A stretch of 64,000 nucleotides of DNA from Hyaloraphidium curvatum SAG 235-1 (lineage: Eukaryota; Fungi; Monoblepharomycota). The stretch spans positions 186,001 to 250,000 of the forward strand of contig JAIVFI010000044.1 in assembly GCA_025558095.1 (NCBI GenBank). The letters are read 5' to 3'. Of this stretch, positions 46,140 to 51,917 are shown piece by piece. Position 1 is the stretch's first letter. Each line of letters opens with the position of its first letter. Below the pieces are notes generated by a model. It did no database searches. It saw nothing but the letters and a program-made list of their open reading frames with translations, and had not been told where the DNA came from. A program made the translations under genes and the position numbers.

Positions 46140-47239
46140 TCAGTCCTCCCGACCGGCGAAGCTCCACGAGAAAAGCAGCACCTCCCCTGACGACGCCCGC
46201 CGCACGGCTCCCCCGAGGGTCAGCTCCGCCGCCGACGACGTCCTCCTCCCCACCGGAATCCTCTCGTCCGCATCGCGCTTTGCGATCCGCCCGTCCGACC
46301 CCCGCCTCACGTGCCCCGACCGCGGGTTCGTGAGCGACAGCCTGTCCAGCGCGGCGCCCAGCTCCGCCTCGGCCCCCGGCGACCGCGCCAGTCCCGCGAG
46401 CTCGGCGATGCTCCGCCGCCGGAGCTCGCGGGAGGCGAGCCGGCGCCCGAGGGTGGAGGGGAACCGCGGGCGGACGGGGGGGAAGTCGTCTGGGGGAGGG
46501 GGTTCCCCGGGGGAGGAGGGTTCGGTGGGTTGGGGGGTGCGGTCCTGCATGACGCGGACGACGGGGCTGGCGTCCGATTCGGGGAGGTGGGCGTTGCGGA
46601 GTGGGGAGCGGCGGGTGCCTGGTCTAGAATGTCAGACGGGCCGAGACCACGAATGCCGGAAAGCTCACGTTTGGAGTAGAGGTTCCCCAGGTACTTTTCC
46701 TTGGGAGTGGGCGTTTCGAGCTCCACGGAGTGCCGTTCCAGCACCCGCTCCGCGATCGCCACGAGCTCTTCGAGCGGCAGGAGTTCCGGTGTCGGCGAAG
46801 GCGTGCGGTTGGCCTCGCGAACGCCATCGGGAGGCGGATCGGGCTCATCGTCCGGATTCCGTTTGTCCGGTATTCGCAGGGATGTGCCGATGGGGGGTTG
46901 GTCGGCGTGGGCGACCTTGGTCGGGGACATTGCGGGGGCGACTCGCACCACAGCGGGGGCCTCCGCCGCCGCCTTGAGGGCGTTGTTGTCGACGGCGATG
47001 CGCAGGTAGCCGGTCTCCTTTTCCGTCTTCCACCGCGGCTGGGCCGTCCGGGAGACGTACCACGACTCGATCGCGTCATCGGCCAACGAGTCATCGCGGG
47101 GGGCCACGGGCCGCGGAGGACCCCGCGGCTTCATCCGGCGCGCCTGGCGGAGCCGCGCCTGCAGCTTTGCCGGCGACATTGCGGGGTCGTCCGTCAAGGT
47201 CGACGGCTCGATGACTCTGCCCAGAATAGGCGCCCCCAT
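46140..47239 (-). CDS. Hypothetical Pro/Ser-rich protein
   Basis: The ORF from ATG 47239 joins ORF 46140-46550 through a GTGAGC..CTGAC..CAG intron at ~46619-46668. It contains SP/TP sites but no domain I recognise. Confidence 0.5.
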
Positions 47240-47507
47240 CGTGTCCCAGGCGCCGGAGCGGCCCCTCAAGCCCAGCAGGCAGCCGCGTGCTTCTCAATAC
47301 AGGCGGATTGCGCCGCGGAATATTCGGGCCGGGTCCGCCGGAGTTGTTGCCCGGGCCCTGACTGAGTGCACATGCCGCGAACGACGCCGCGCTTTTCCGT
47401 CCGCAGCACCAAACGGCCCCACGGCCCGCCCCCCGGCGCCGCCGCCGCCGCCCGGGCCGCGCCGCGGGCAGCACAGCCGCGCCGCGCTCGCGCCGCCCCG
47501 CCCCGCC

Positions 47508-48577
47508 ATGGCGGACCTCGCCGCGGCCGAGGCGCGCATTGATCTCAAGGTGCGTCGCGTCACAGCGCCCCGCCGCCCCCGCCGCCCCGGCTGGCCGCCC
47601 CGCCGTGCGCCGCATTGCGCTTGCGCGGCCGCGTGGACACCGCCGGCGGCGGTCGCGGGCCCCGCCACTCCCCCCGGCTGACGTCCCCCGGACCTTCTCC
47701 CGTCGTCCCCCATTTTCAGGTGCTGCATCACATTGGCAACGACGGTGCGTGGGGCCGCGCTGAGGGTCGGGGGGCTTTGGCTGACGACGCCACCGGGTTC
47801 CAGCGGCCGCCAAGGGCAAGGATGCCCGCAAGCAGGACCGTTTCCGCCGCACGGTCCTGGCCGTCGACCAGATCGTCAACCAGAAGCTGTACAAGAGCAA
47901 GTCGAGCTCCCTCGAGCAGTACTTTCGCGACGTTTGGAAGATCTCGCGCGCCCAGGTCTACCGTTTCATCGACTCGGCGTGCGTGCTGAAGGTGCGTCAC
48001 ACGGTGCCCCCCACCCGGCGTGCACACGCGCTGACGGTTTCGCGCCTCCTCTCCCGCATCTCGCGTGTCCATCCGCCGGATTCTTCCTACGTGCATCCCC
48101 CTGCCGCCCCGCAACGGCGTTCGATCCATCCGCCCCATTTTTCGTTCTGTGCCCTGAATCTGTCTCCCCCCCGCGTCTCCCCCACGCACGATCTCCCGGG
48201 AGCAGCAACTCCAGGGCTTCCCGCACCTCCCCGCGCGCGAGCGGATCTGCCGCACCCTGCGCAAGCTCACGAAATCGCGCACCGACATCCGCAAGCTCTG
48301 GGCGACGGTGCTGGAGCGCAACGCGGCCTCGGCCGACCTCGAGCAGGCCATCACCTCGACTTCGGTCGCGGACGTGTGGAACGAGCTCTCTGCAAAGGGG
48401 CTCGTCGGGTACGGCGGCGAGGATGACAACGAGGAGCTGCCCGAGATCGAGCTGAGCGACCACTCTTCGGACGCCGAGGGAGGCCCCGGACCGCCGGCCG
48501 TGTCCGTGCCCGGGCCCGTCGTCAAATCCTCCGCACCGCGGACGCAGCGGGGACCTAGGCAGAGCTACGTCGAGGAC

Positions 48578-48609
<32 letters not shown>

Positions 48610-49981
48610 AGAAGAGGACGAGGACGAGGACGACGACGGGAGCAGCCTCTCCGCGGACCGCCGCTGGGGCGCGCGTCCGCCCAAGGCCCGCGGCCGGGGC
48701 GGCGGCACCAAGACGCGCCCGCGCGCGGCTGCCAAGCCCAAGAAGGTCGCGCAACCAAGGGGCGGCCGGGGCGGAGGCGCACGCATGCCGGGCCCCGCGG
48801 ACTATGGCATGCAGCCGCAGCAGCTCCCCGGCGGCCGATCGCGCGCCATGCACGCAGTCGCCGCGGCCAGGCAGGCCACCAACATTCTCGAGAACATCTC
48901 GCCTTCGTCCGGCGACCAGCGGAGCAAGCGCCGCCGGACCTCGTTGGACAACCCCACCTCCACCATATCCGCCATCTCGGGCCTCTCGCGGCTGGCCGAG
49001 TCGGGCTACGGCACCGGCATGTACGACGCCCCGGGGGAGCGCTACGCCCGCGCCTACACCGGCGGCGGCGCCCCGCGCGAGGACTACGGTTACTACCCCG
49101 CGCCGCAGCCGCAGTACCCGCACGACGCCGGCCGCTTCCGCGGCGCCGACCCCGCCGCCGATCCGGGGGGCCACGGCTATGCACCCGCTCCCCGCTCGGA
49201 CGAGCCCACGCCGCGCTGGCGCTGGGTGAACGAGGACGACGAAGGGGACGACGTGCTTCTCCCCTGGCAGGACGACGGCATCGAGACCAATAACCACGAG
49301 CTTTCGAGCAACGACGTCGTCCTGTGCACGCACCTGCTCGAGTCGTTCGCCCGGCGCGGGTACCTGCTGCAGCCCTACGTCAACGGCGCCTGGGCCGAGG
49401 GCGTGTCGCACTGGCGCCTCGCCCCGCGCCGCGACCTGGTGCACAGGCCGCTGCAGAACAAGCGCCGCAACCCGGTGCTGCTCACGTACCCGCCCCAGGG
49501 CGCCGGGCCCCGCGCCCCGCAGCAGGCCATGGAGGGCGTGCAGGGCTTCCCGCCCCAGCCCGCGAGCGCCCAGCCCCCGTTCGGCAGCCCGCAGCCCCCC
49601 GCAGGCTACGGCAGCCCCGCCTTCCACGAAGCGCAGCAGTCGTTCCACGACCCGCCCGCGCACGCGTTCGACAACCAGCCGCGCACGCAGGCCGAGCAGC
49701 CCGCGGAGCGGTGGGAGGGCGGCGGCGAAAAGTTCCTGCACCCGCAGCGCATGCTCTCGCCCTTCGAGCACGGCGAGGAGCCCAGGTTCCACGATGCGCC
49801 CATGGATGCCGCGAGCCCGCCGTCGGGGATGCTGGGCATGTTCTCCGGCAACGGGGCTCAGGCGGGGTCGCACGAGGGGATCTTTGCGGCCATGGGCGGG
49901 GGCCAGCTTGAGCACGATTTCGGGGGATCCTACGGCGCGGCGGTCAAGCCGCCCGATTCGCCGGCGCCGGGCCAGAAGTGA
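47508..49981 (+). CDS. Uncharacterised putative DNA-binding protein (phage/cyanobacterial-type helical module, acidic tract, disordered tail)
   Basis: Three GT-AG introns give MADLAAAEARIDLK/VLHHIGND/AAAKG...QKLYKSKSSSLEQYFRDVWKISRAQVYRFIDSACVLK/QLQGFPHLPARERICRTLRKL...IRKLWATVL. It also has a poly-E/D run and an NLS-like RSKRRR. Confidence 0.75.
48571..48637 (+). repeat. GAG/GAA/GAC trinucleotide tract encoding a poly-acidic run
   Basis: EDEEEEEEEEEEEEEDEDEDDD. Confidence 0.9.
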
Positions 49982-50261: not shown

Positions 50262-51917
50262 TCAGACGTCCAAAAAGCTCATCGGATCCTCCTCGTCCTC
50301 CGTTTTCGGTGCCACGCCGTGGGTAAGAAAGAGGTCCGGGTGATCCTGCAACAGTTTCAGGAGCACAGCCTGGTCTTCTTCGGTCCCGCCGAAGTCGTGC
50401 TGCTGCAGGTACTGGTCAAGGTCCATGTTCCCGCCGTCCAAGTCGACCCCGAGCGCCGATTGGACGTTGGCCAGCGAGTGCTCCAGGTTCTCAATGTCCT
50501 TGGACAGCGCATCCGCGCTCCCCTTGGTCAGATCGATGTTGGACGCCATTTTGGAGAGGTTGCCGATGGCTTCCGTCGGAGGGGGTGCGACGAGCGAGGC
50601 CAGAGGGAGGTTGAAGAGGGCGGCGGTCGACTGCGGTATCACCGCGTCGGAAGCCGGCCCGGGGGGAGTGCTGGGTCCGCCGTTGATGGTTTCCGTCGGT
50701 TCGGGAGATGCAGCGCCCTTCTTCTTGCCCTTGGCGGCAGACGGGGGTTTGGCCTCGGAGATCTTGCGGGCGGCGGGAGCGGAAGCGCCGGCGCTCGAGG
50801 TGGACGAGCTCGAGCCAGCGGGTGAAGGGGCGTTGAAGGGCAGAATGATGGGACCTTGCCGCGCGGCTGCAAGTTGAAGCAGTTTAGAGTCGTGAGGAAG
50901 ACGCCCCTTCCAAGAGCACCCACAATGCACGTGCTGCTCAGGTTCCGGCCTCAGCTGCAGAATCTCCTCGATCCCGTTGGCTGCGTTCTCGTCATCCTCG
51001 TCGTCGTCGTCGTCCGTCAGCGCCACGCCCGTGACCAGCTTCCGCCGCTTCCCCTGTCCCAGGCCAGTCTTCGACTGGAACACAGAGGCCAGGAACTGGA
51101 TGATCTTCTCGATGAGCTCCTGCTGCTTCTGGTACTGCGCCCGCAGGCTCTCCGTTTCCGCCCACATCTCCTGGTTCGCCTTCTGCATCGTCTGGAGGTC
51201 GTTCTGGATCGCAAACTGGTGCCGTTTGATGCCGGCCATCTCCTGGATCAGCGTCGACAGTTCGAGCGACGAGCCGGGCGACAAGGCCTGCGGATTGTCC
51301 TCCTCCTTCCCCTTTTTGCGCGTGACGAGCGAGAGCAGCTCGGGCTGGTCCCGGAGGAAGTGCGGGTGGGCAAACTCTGTCGCCAGCTCGGCCTCCTGGG
51401 GAGGGAGCAGGGCGCCGGCCTGCAGGTGCGGAACTTTGTGGAAGCCGTACATGTTGAGCTGGCGGACAAAGGAGGAGAAGTTCGAGTGCTTGAAGAAGCG
51501 GGGGAGGATCTCGTGGGCAAACTCGTCCGGGTTCTCGACTGCGGCCGGGGTCAGAGGGGGGCGGGGCCACGATAGCCGCGCTTCCTACCGATGAACGAGT
51601 TTCCCTCTTCGCTCCAGTGGATCAGGTTGTCCGAGTTGGGGTCGTTGACCATGCTGCGGAGATTCGGCCCGGTGTCAGAGGAGCCGCGCGGGGGTTCGCA
51701 ACCCGGCCCACTTGAAGAGCTTGGAGAGAAACTGCGGCACATTCTTTCCCGCCATCGGCCCCGGGGCGATGAGCCGCGGCGGCAGCTGGGCGAGCGGGGC
51801 GGCAGCGACAGACTCGAGAGAGAAGTCCACGGGCGAGTTCAGCGCACCCGCGCCCGCCGCGGCGCGCCGTGTGCCGACGCCCCCGCGGCTCTCCGAAGAG
51901 CGGGTCACGCGCTCCAT
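50262..51917 (-). CDS. HSF1: Heat shock transcription factor
   Basis: VPQFLSKLF/MVNDP..LIHWS..GNSFI/..FAHEILPRFFKHSNFSSFVRQLNMYGFHKVPHLQ; heptad coiled coil with IEKIIQFLASVF. The start codon could instead be the MAGKNVP ATG at ~51755. Confidence 0.9.

Follow-up and report, generated by a model that had tools for sequence, protein, structure and literature searches.

Positions 47508-49981 on the forward strand of a 64,000-nucleotide stretch of Hyaloraphidium curvatum SAG 235-1 DNA, here termed the window, hold one gene of four exons and three introns, as judged from the sequence and its homologues. The predicted product of about 675 amino acids is probably a DNA-binding regulator and belongs to a protein family, known here from zoosporic fungi and aphelids, that has not been described before. 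The reading that we favor, and consider rather likely, is that of a nuclear regulator, which would bind DNA as a dimer and carries a helix-turn-helix (HTH) module of the ParB/Noc/KorB class. By sequence comparison the module is clearly related to a module family of bacteria and phages, which is likewise undescribed and comprises hundreds of members.

The regulatory proteins of zoosporic fungi, including Batrachochytrium and the rumen Neocallimastigomycota, are poorly known, and the present family is invisible to Pfam-based surveys. The family is a testable candidate for lineage-specific regulation, e.g., of the zoospore programme, and a new domain model could readily be seeded from its alignment.

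A four-exon gene under purifying selection

All exons and introns lie on the forward strand. Exon 1 (47508..47549) starts with the start codon, translates into approximately 14 codons and ends in the motif RIDLK, which is conserved in the syntenic orthologue on contig L012. Intron 1 (47550..47719) is 170 nt long with GT..AG borders, the GT beginning at 47550, and is followed by the 25-nt exon 2 (47720..47744), which encodes VLHHIGND plus one base (phase 1). Intron 2 (47745..47803; 59 nt, GT..AG) contains a branch-like CTGAC site. Exon 3 (47804..47991) encodes the first half of the HTH module, i.e., the long helix, helix 2, the turn and the start of the recognition helix with the motif ISRAQVYRF. 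Intron 3 (47992..48205; 214 nt, GT..AG, phase 0) divides the module, and exon 4 (48206..49981) extends through the TGA stop codon. The module is missing from the list of open reading frames, because the frame of exon 3 contains no ATG, GTG or TTG upstream of 47983.

All three junctions are colinear with homologous proteins. In the Rhizophlyctis protein P0014 the match to exon 3 stops at residue 81 and that to exon 4 resumes at residue 82 without a gap, and the RIDLK|VLHH join of exons 1 and 2 is uninterrupted in many chytrid proteins. The syntenic orthologue on L012 contains all four exons in order, and its equivalent of exon 2 reads ILHHIGNE. The three-intron splice model put forward in the initial annotation is borne out by this colinearity and by the exon order in L012, and every peptide string quoted there from the sequence was found in the frame assigned to it. 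Homology supports the model and confirms the four-exon gene as real; in the favored reading it is a nuclear gene of the expressed type with introns.

Searches expected to find a public protein of the window gene returned none, and the gene may be unannotated in public protein sets; a paralogue from the same genome is already public (KAI9032419.1). The position of intron 3 is shared by an intron of a paralogue on contig 1, and in a paralogue on contig 3 the entire module resides in one open frame, intron 3 being absent.

Strong purifying selection acts on the gene, since the codon changes between exon 3 and its counterpart in L012 comprise 27 synonymous and only one non-synonymous change. At the nucleotide level 36 of 186 positions differ, yet at the protein level only one of 62 residues does (61/62 identical). 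The introns of the two loci are just 43-59% alike, with 49% for intron 1.

A module shared with bacteria and phages

The N-terminal module comprises approximately 110-140 amino acids and is all-helical. In the searches the exon peptides were used singly, and the whole module was represented by the paralogue P0003 from the same genome and the orthologue P0014. Neither the module nor the exon peptides gave a meaningful match in Pfam, PHROGs, NCBIfam or PDB sequences, the paralogue module and both alignments included. A phmmer search with the module of the intronless paralogue against 1.84 billion proteins returned 125 matches, with eight bacterial proteins in the tail (E 2e-5 to 6e-4). One match, P0004, with 19 matched stretches, was discarded as a translated tandem repeat.

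A profile built from eukaryotic sequences only scores the eight bacterial proteins at 52-74 bits across the full module, corresponding to E 5.5e-16 to 4.3e-9 at Z=1.84e9, the size of the whole library. Alignment of 87 eukaryotic against the eight bacterial rows by hhalign yields a probability of 99.8% and E 1.6e-27 over 111 columns. The window exons themselves match profile positions 20-80 (exon 3) and 79-140 (exon 4). Exon 3 is 71% identical to residues 27-81 of P0014, and the second half of the module (48206..48400), which encodes the P-x-x-E-R-x-C-R-x-L, LW and TST helices, aligns to P0014 residues 82-143. The fungal and the bacterial or phage modules are homologous over their entire length, with the same conserved positions in the order F, LY, F/L-E-x-Y, W, S-R-x-x-A/V-Y-R, P-x-x-E, R-x-L, W and T-S/A, and of these the window peptides carry LY, E-x-Y, W, S-R..A-Y-R, P..E, R.L, W and T-A/S (alignments A1 and A2 and consensus sequences). 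The motif of the recognition helix is almost invariant across paralogues and domains of life.

The bacterial family has no name; alignment A2 provides its seeds, and proteins such as P0121, P0122, P0095 and P0134 carry the module as their N-terminal domain. At E<=1e-5 the short prokaryotic relatives number 595. Some prokaryotic members are free-standing proteins of 130-250 amino acids, one example being P0243 from a cyanobacterium of the genus Hydrococcus; in other bacterial members the module is joined to Dam, MT-A70 or DUF4326. The fungal proteins, in contrast, span 300-1600 amino acids and feature low-complexity regions; RIDLKVLHH forms a conserved extension at their N terminus, and they often also carry a mini-domain in the C-terminal part.

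One bacterial member adjoins a type I R-M system, another resides in a phage-like early region together with YqaJ, pRha, a cI-type HTH and a DNA methylase, and on one cyanobacterial chromosome a member is located between tal and zwf. The initial annotation had named cyanobacterial and phage proteins as relatives, and significant prokaryotic and phage homologues were recovered, including the cyanobacterial chromosomal gene and the phage-like early region. A locus scan with a single protein matched only in a Planctomycetota (Fuerstiella) metagenome-assembled genome, among the relatives of which presence is patchy (11/201). A tblastn search with one bacterial member gave no match among 50,697 records of cultured phages, and a scan of IMG/VR with P0105 revealed no relative. 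In the ESM Atlas most of the nearest clusters are viral, and a Plasmid_parti_N/DUF3102 cluster lies nearby. Sub-threshold Pfam matches occur in the bacterial relatives P0192 (HTH_ParB, E 0.009; DUF3102, E 0.0098) and P0123 (E 0.083).

The family falls into no known eukaryotic family, as the initial annotation had anticipated, Pfam being empty in at least 20 members. No partner domain was detected by Pfam in the 18 long members scanned, and searches of the literature for the family, or for DUF3102 in fungi, found nothing relevant.

Fold, architecture and probable function

The AlphaFold2 model of the chytrid orthologue P0014, which stands in for the window protein, is all-helical (pLDDT 95.2, pTM 0.88). 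It superimposes over the whole domain with the HTH domains of ParB, Spo0J, Noc and KorB at Z 5.9-8.3. These values are middling for helical proteins, for which similarity counts as weak when Z stays under about 13, and Raf1 scores as high. The DNA-binding domain of Noc on DNA reaches Z 8.3 (114/116 residues, 3.3 A) and Spo0J Z 7.7 (109 residues, 2.9 A), followed by ParB (Z 6.3-6.7) and KorB (Z 5.9-6.4). In Foldseek the most informative matches are SopB, Noc, VirB and P1 ParB on DNA, all with E of at least 0.4, and no Foldseek match was obtained at E<=1e-3. Among BFVD models those of phages give TM 0.60-0.66 and those of giant viruses match poorly.

The predicted fold also resembles the ParB class in the HTH being followed by helices that start at a conserved proline. 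The fungal protein differs from these domains in its eukaryotic, nuclear-type architecture, and the identity is 8-16%. Pfam gave no ParB/Srx N-terminal CTPase domain for any member of the family, the window product included. HTH_ParB (PF17762) and its relatives stay below the Pfam threshold in the window exons, the paralogue and the orthologues. The initial annotation had expected an HTH, and the resemblance of the P0014 model to the DNA-binding domains of ParB, Noc and KorB agrees with it. Homologues, known family and fold, three of the four points on which that reading had been staked, were examined, and none overturned it.

The top of the structural list is occupied by the N-terminal domain of Raf1, which does not bind DNA and belongs to a chaperone found in cyanobacteria and plants (top match at Z 8.2-8.6; Raf1 matches at Z 7.7-8.6 over 116-118 residues, 8-10% identity), and the module might accordingly be a protein-interaction or chaperone-like helical domain that does not bind DNA. 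We regard this as highly improbable, since the ParB, Noc and Spo0J domains score equally within error and cover the whole domain, the bacterial relatives include fusions to DNA methyltransferases and genes located in phage early regions, and both the sub-threshold HTH_ParB and DUF3102 matches and the nearby Plasmid_parti_N/DUF3102 cluster point elsewhere. Moreover, the fungal protein contains a basic stretch as well as a motif similar to a nuclear localization signal (NLS).

These elements are located downstream of the module. In translation, exon 4 continues with an acidic D/E tract of 22 residues (48572..48637), which is shared with the orthologues P0001 and P0002, a basic RGG-like region (48659..48784) and the putative NLS-like motif RSKRRR (48920..48937), where KRRRTSLD is conserved in the same two orthologues. 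A conserved C-terminal mini-domain (49211..49498) with a confident core at about 49301-49420 and a Q/P/G-rich low-complexity tail (49499..49978) complete the protein. The acidic tract, basic region, RSKRRR, second small domain and Q/P-rich tail listed in the initial annotation were thus all located on exon 4.

The mini-domain is found in 43 family proteins (alignment A3). In the AlphaFold2 model its core consists of one helix and a small beta sheet (pLDDT 87-93), and it has no Pfam match and no structural neighbor above Z 2.4. The mini-domain is predicted to homodimerize, with a score of 0.45 versus 0.00 for the best of three controls; the dimer runs share at least 73% of contacts, and the partner pLDDT is at least 59. 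Of 30 proteins with structures solved as same-chain pairs, 21 attain the mark used for calling a dimer, as against none of 23 solved as single chains; for eukaryotes alone, the respective figures are 17/29 and 0/30.

ParB-class proteins bind DNA as dimers via separate dimerization domains, and the predicted C-terminal element of the fungal protein would be a counterpart. For the window protein we infer DNA binding, nuclear location and a regulatory role. The protein would enter the nucleus, the mini-domain would pair two copies, the dimer would bind DNA through its two HTH modules, and the acidic and Q/P-rich regions would recruit the transcription machinery. A role as transcription factor is suggested by compositional hints, namely the acidic tract, RSKRRR and the Q/P-rich tail.

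The module could also bind DNA in a protein that is not a gene-specific transcription factor, but an architectural, segregation-like or DNA-modification-associated factor. ParB-class proteins are chiefly partition, occlusion or silencing factors, and sequence-specific factors that have diversified into a family would not usually keep the recognition helix so nearly invariant across paralogues. The bacterial fusions to Dam, MT-A70 and DUF4326 fit as well; under this alternative, echoing the Dam and MT-A70 fusions, the fungal proteins might possibly target or read adenine methylation. Early-diverging fungi are rich in 6mA, but so are the Mucoromycota, which appear to be without the family. The at least 20 fungal members scanned harbor neither a methyltransferase nor any other Pfam domain, and activators typically contain acidic and Q/P-rich tracts such as those seen here. 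On balance, we consider a factor of this kind unlikely and retain the nuclear regulator as the preferred reading.

Distribution and origin of the family

The approximately 45 named eukaryotic members all come from Chytridiomycota, Monoblepharidomycetes, Neocallimastigomycota, Blastocladiomycota or Aphelida. No member from Dikarya or Mucoromycota appeared in one single-sequence search and the named subset of its matches. The distribution predicted in the initial annotation is therefore matched, every named member belonging to zoosporic fungi or aphelids and none to Dikarya.

In an unrooted tree the 80 eukaryotic rows and the 85 prokaryotic rows fall on opposite sides of a single branch (SH-aLRT 99.9); the direction of transfer is not readable from this tree, because it is unrooted and its bacterial sample was grown outward from the members nearest the fungi. 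The direction that we favor would run from bacteria or phages to fungi. Prokaryotic members are far more numerous and show a much wider range of architectures and contexts, the HTH fold of the ParB class belongs to bacteria and plasmids, and among the named eukaryotic matches one fungal grade alone has the module. The same points speak against other histories of the homology, in which an old eukaryotic domain was captured by phages or bacteria, or the module arrived via giant viruses. Such histories would be compatible with an unrooted tree that has one separating branch only, and one report describes giant viruses persisting in zoosporic fungi (PMC13533422). Yet, the giant-virus models in BFVD fit poorly, and the window gene is interrupted by spliceosomal introns and lies in conserved synteny, so that we judge these histories to be decidedly unlikely.

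The favored origin would comprise a single ancient transfer from bacteria or a phage to the fungal stem and a later loss in non-flagellated fungi. As a tentative scenario, for which we claim something short of even chances, a phage or bacterial ParB-class HTH would have been acquired a single time by the ancestor that aphelids and fungi share and would have become the DNA-binding domain of new dimeric transcription regulators, a family with multiple paralogues in each genome that was lost along with the flagellum.

A parallel is provided by the APSES/SBF regulators, which derive from KilA-N and represent a viral- or bacterial-type DNA-binding domain fixed early in fungal evolution (PMC4862756). 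The likeness is a proposed evolutionary analogy only: fold and sequence are unrelated, KilA-N being alpha/beta and the present family all-helical in the model, and Pfam detected no KilA-N in the window exons or the paralogue. Furthermore, APSES was retained in Dikarya, whereas the present family was found solely in zoosporic lineages. If the proposed origin holds true, the family would mark the zoosporic grade, and fungi would have recruited DNA-binding domains of mobile elements into their regulators for a second time, independently of KilA-N/APSES. Among the carriers of a family member is the amphibian pathogen Batrachochytrium.

Gene structure and conservation of the locus

The target gene (47508-49981, plus strand) is located on contig 44 of an assembly comprising 31.9 Mb in 55 contigs and shows a GC content of 71.9%, compared to 64.7% for the window. 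The gene is composed of four plus-strand exons (47508-47549, 47720-47744, 47804-47991 and 48206-49981), all read from the sequence and the latter two also from homology to P0014, the Rhizophlyctis rosea orthologue. All three introns (170, 59 and 214 nt) are bounded by GT..AG. The initial annotation had the exon structure right, apart from an offset of one base. Exon 3 shares 71% identity with P0014 residues 27-81, exon 4 picks up at residue 82, and the motif spanning the exon 1/2 junction is uninterrupted in many chytrid proteins. The contig 1 paralogue (G000:C1:598610-599162, minus strand) harbours an intron inside the helix-turn-helix (HTH) module, at a codon boundary matching that of the target gene; the paralogues on contig 3 (G000:C3:1009424-1009822, minus strand) and contig 24 (G000:C24:367408-367821, minus strand) are intronless at this position, and the former encodes the module within a single open frame. 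Since the exon 3 frame contains no start codon upstream of 47983, the module is missing from the ORF list.

A Logan contig from a related organism of lower GC content (L012) carries an orthologue with the four exons in order. In exon 3 the two genes differ at 36 of 186 nt and at one residue (27 synonymous versus 1 non-synonymous codon changes), and their introns are only 43-59% alike. Judged from this sequence comparison, the target gene is genuine and evolves under purifying selection. Convergent with it, the window contains a fragment of a gene encoding an HSF-type DNA-binding domain (50262-51452, minus strand; PF00447, E 2e-5); L012 has a matching downstream neighbour, and thus, synteny is conserved. 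Directly upstream, on the opposite strand, a 320-aa proline-rich open frame without a Pfam match (46307-47269, minus strand) could represent either a gene transcribed divergently or a spurious, GC-driven ORF.

Bacterial and phage relatives of the HTH module

Searches of Pfam, PHROGs, NCBIfam and PDB sequences were negative for the exons, the paralogue and the orthologues alike, and no family member scanned contains a Pfam domain. The exons were searched singly, while the intact modules of P0014 and of the H. curvatum paralogue P0003 represented the whole domain in searches and fold prediction. No known eukaryotic family claims the protein by Pfam; assignment to such a family would have refuted the initial proposal. 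A phmmer search with the paralogue module against 1.84 billion representative proteins returned 125 matches at E<=1e-3, where the strong matches are fungal and the tail (E 2e-5 to 6e-4) consists of short bacterial-type proteins with an N-terminal module. One candidate, P0004, reached E 2e-32 through 19 partial matches, yet this 1282-aa “protein” of a ~77-aa tandem repeat is a repeat artefact and was discarded. To avoid circularity, a profile was built from the eukaryotic matches alone; over the full module length, it matched the eight bacterial proteins of that tail with 52-74 bits and, at whole-library size, with E values of 5.5e-16 to 4.3e-9. Likewise, hhalign aligned 87 eukaryotic with 8 bacterial rows over 111 columns (probability 99.8%, E 1.6e-27). 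The prokaryotic homologues predicted from the sequence alone were thus recovered, and the consensus of the bacterial alignment largely reproduces the motif given in the initial description.

A profile search restricted to proteins of 77-245 aa identified 595 relatives (E<=1e-5). In bacteria, the module occurs either on its own or joined to phage-type Dam (PF05869), MT-A70 (PF05063) or DUF4326. One member adjoins a type I restriction-modification system, and another resides in a phage-like early region that also encodes a cI-type HTH, a YqaJ exonuclease, pRha, an SNF2 helicase and a DNA methylase. The module is present in 11 of the 201 relatives examined of a Planctomycetota MAG (Fuerstiella genome), a patchiness as seen for mobile genes. 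By shape and by features, the closest ESM Atlas clusters lack a name and are for the most part viral (Uroviricota) or bacterial, and one of them carries Plasmid_parti_N and DUF3102; cultured phages and IMG/VR, queried with single family members, gave no match. An unexpected chromosomal setting for a phage-type HTH is found in a Hydrococcus sp. MAG (GCA_025454425.1), where a free-standing 177-aa member (L033:7001-7534) lies within a cyanobacterial oxidative pentose phosphate gene cluster, between transaldolase and zwf-opcA and downstream of fbp.

AlphaFold2 predicted nine helices for P0014 residues 1-150 (87-row alignment; pLDDT 95.2, pTM 0.88). Foldseek found no PDB match at E<=1e-3, its sole coherent rows being ParB-family DNA-binding domains on DNA (SopB, Noc, VirB and P1 ParB). 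VIA-align superposed the Noc DNA-binding domain over 114/116 residues at 3.3 A with a Z of 8.3, Spo0J over 109 residues at 2.9 A (Z 7.7), ParB with a Z of 6.3-6.7 and KorB with a Z of 5.9-6.4; taken alone, these structural scores are middling for a helical domain. BFVD phage models, including ParB-like and DUF3102 proteins, reached TM 0.60-0.66. HTH_ParB and DUF3102 matches were sub-threshold in two bacterial relatives, and membership in an HTH_ParB-type Pfam model fails at threshold. Taken together, the Foldseek, VIA-align, BFVD and sub-threshold Pfam matches favour reading the module as an HTH domain of the ParB/KorB class that lacks the ParB CTPase domain. A fold devoid of an HTH had been considered fatal to the initial proposal; the predicted fold has one. 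The proposal withstood the three refuting conditions that were checked, on prokaryotic homologues, known families and fold. Among the structural neighbours of the P0014 model, the N-terminal alpha domain of the Rubisco accumulation factor Raf1 ranks first, with a Z of 7.7-8.6 over 116-118 residues that is on a par with ParB/Noc. A pure protein-interaction role akin to Raf1 is a less likely reading than DNA binding.

C-terminal mini-domain and putative function

Beyond the module, the protein continues with an acidic tract of 22 residues, an RGG-like basic region and the motif RSKRRR. Further downstream, a second stretch (49211-49498) is conserved in 43 family proteins of chytrids, blastoclads and aphelids. 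AlphaFold2 models its core as one helix and a small sheet (pLDDT 87-93 over ~40 residues), for which no similar solved structure was found. This mini-domain passed a homodimer test (score 0.45 versus 0.00 for the best of 3 controls), whose mark was reached by 21/30 proteins solved as one-chain pairs and 0/23 solved as single chains (17/29 versus 0/30 for eukaryotes). At least 73% of contacts agree between runs, with a partner pLDDT of at least 59. The predictions support pairing of the mini-domain without showing it.

The best reading of the target protein is a putative nuclear, dimeric DNA-binding regulator, where the mini-domain would hold two ParB-class HTH modules together and the acidic and Q/P-rich regions would act as effectors. 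The recognition-helix motif is near-invariant across paralogues and bacteria, and this calls for caution, since a common or non-specific target would account for it no less well than diversified specificities. Due to this near-invariance, a DNA-bound but non-classical role, such as an architectural one or one tied to DNA methylation, at which the fusions seen in bacteria hint, retains a sizeable share of the probability next to the regulator. No Pfam model, name or paper was found for the fungal family or its bacterial/phage relatives. Since the fold class is known, as is the idea that fungal regulators arise from mobile-element DNA-binding domains (PMC4862756), the family is a variant within that class and no new category.

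Eukaryotic distribution and paralogues

The ~45 named eukaryotic matches all belong to five groups: Chytridiomycota (among others Rhizophlyctis, Spizellomyces, Powellomyces, Geranomyces, Polychytrium, Cladochytrium, Nowakowskiella, Chytridium, Obelidium, Boothiomyces and Batrachochytrium dendrobatidis), Monoblepharidomycetes (Gonapodya, Hyaloraphidium), Neocallimastigomycota, Blastocladiomycota (Allomyces, Paraphysoderma) and Aphelida (Amoeboaphelidium and a Paraphelidium transcript). In one single-sequence and one word-indexed search, none of these matches came from Dikarya, where few or none had been anticipated, nor from Mucoromycota or other eukaryotic groups. In a maximum-likelihood tree, one branch (SH-aLRT 99.9) separates all 80 eukaryotic from all 85 prokaryotic modules. 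At the sequence level, the tree is compatible with a single origin in eukaryotes and does not give the direction; different histories, for instance transfer in the reverse direction or by way of giant viruses (PMC13533422), are less likely.

H. curvatum, a zoosporic fungus of monoblepharid type, possesses four family members, on contigs 44, 1, 3 and 24. Among these, the C-terminal mini-domain was found in the target gene only and not in the three other paralogues. For one paralogue of this assembly, GenBank holds an identical Hyaloraphidium curvatum sequence, listed as the “hypothetical protein” KAI9032419.1.
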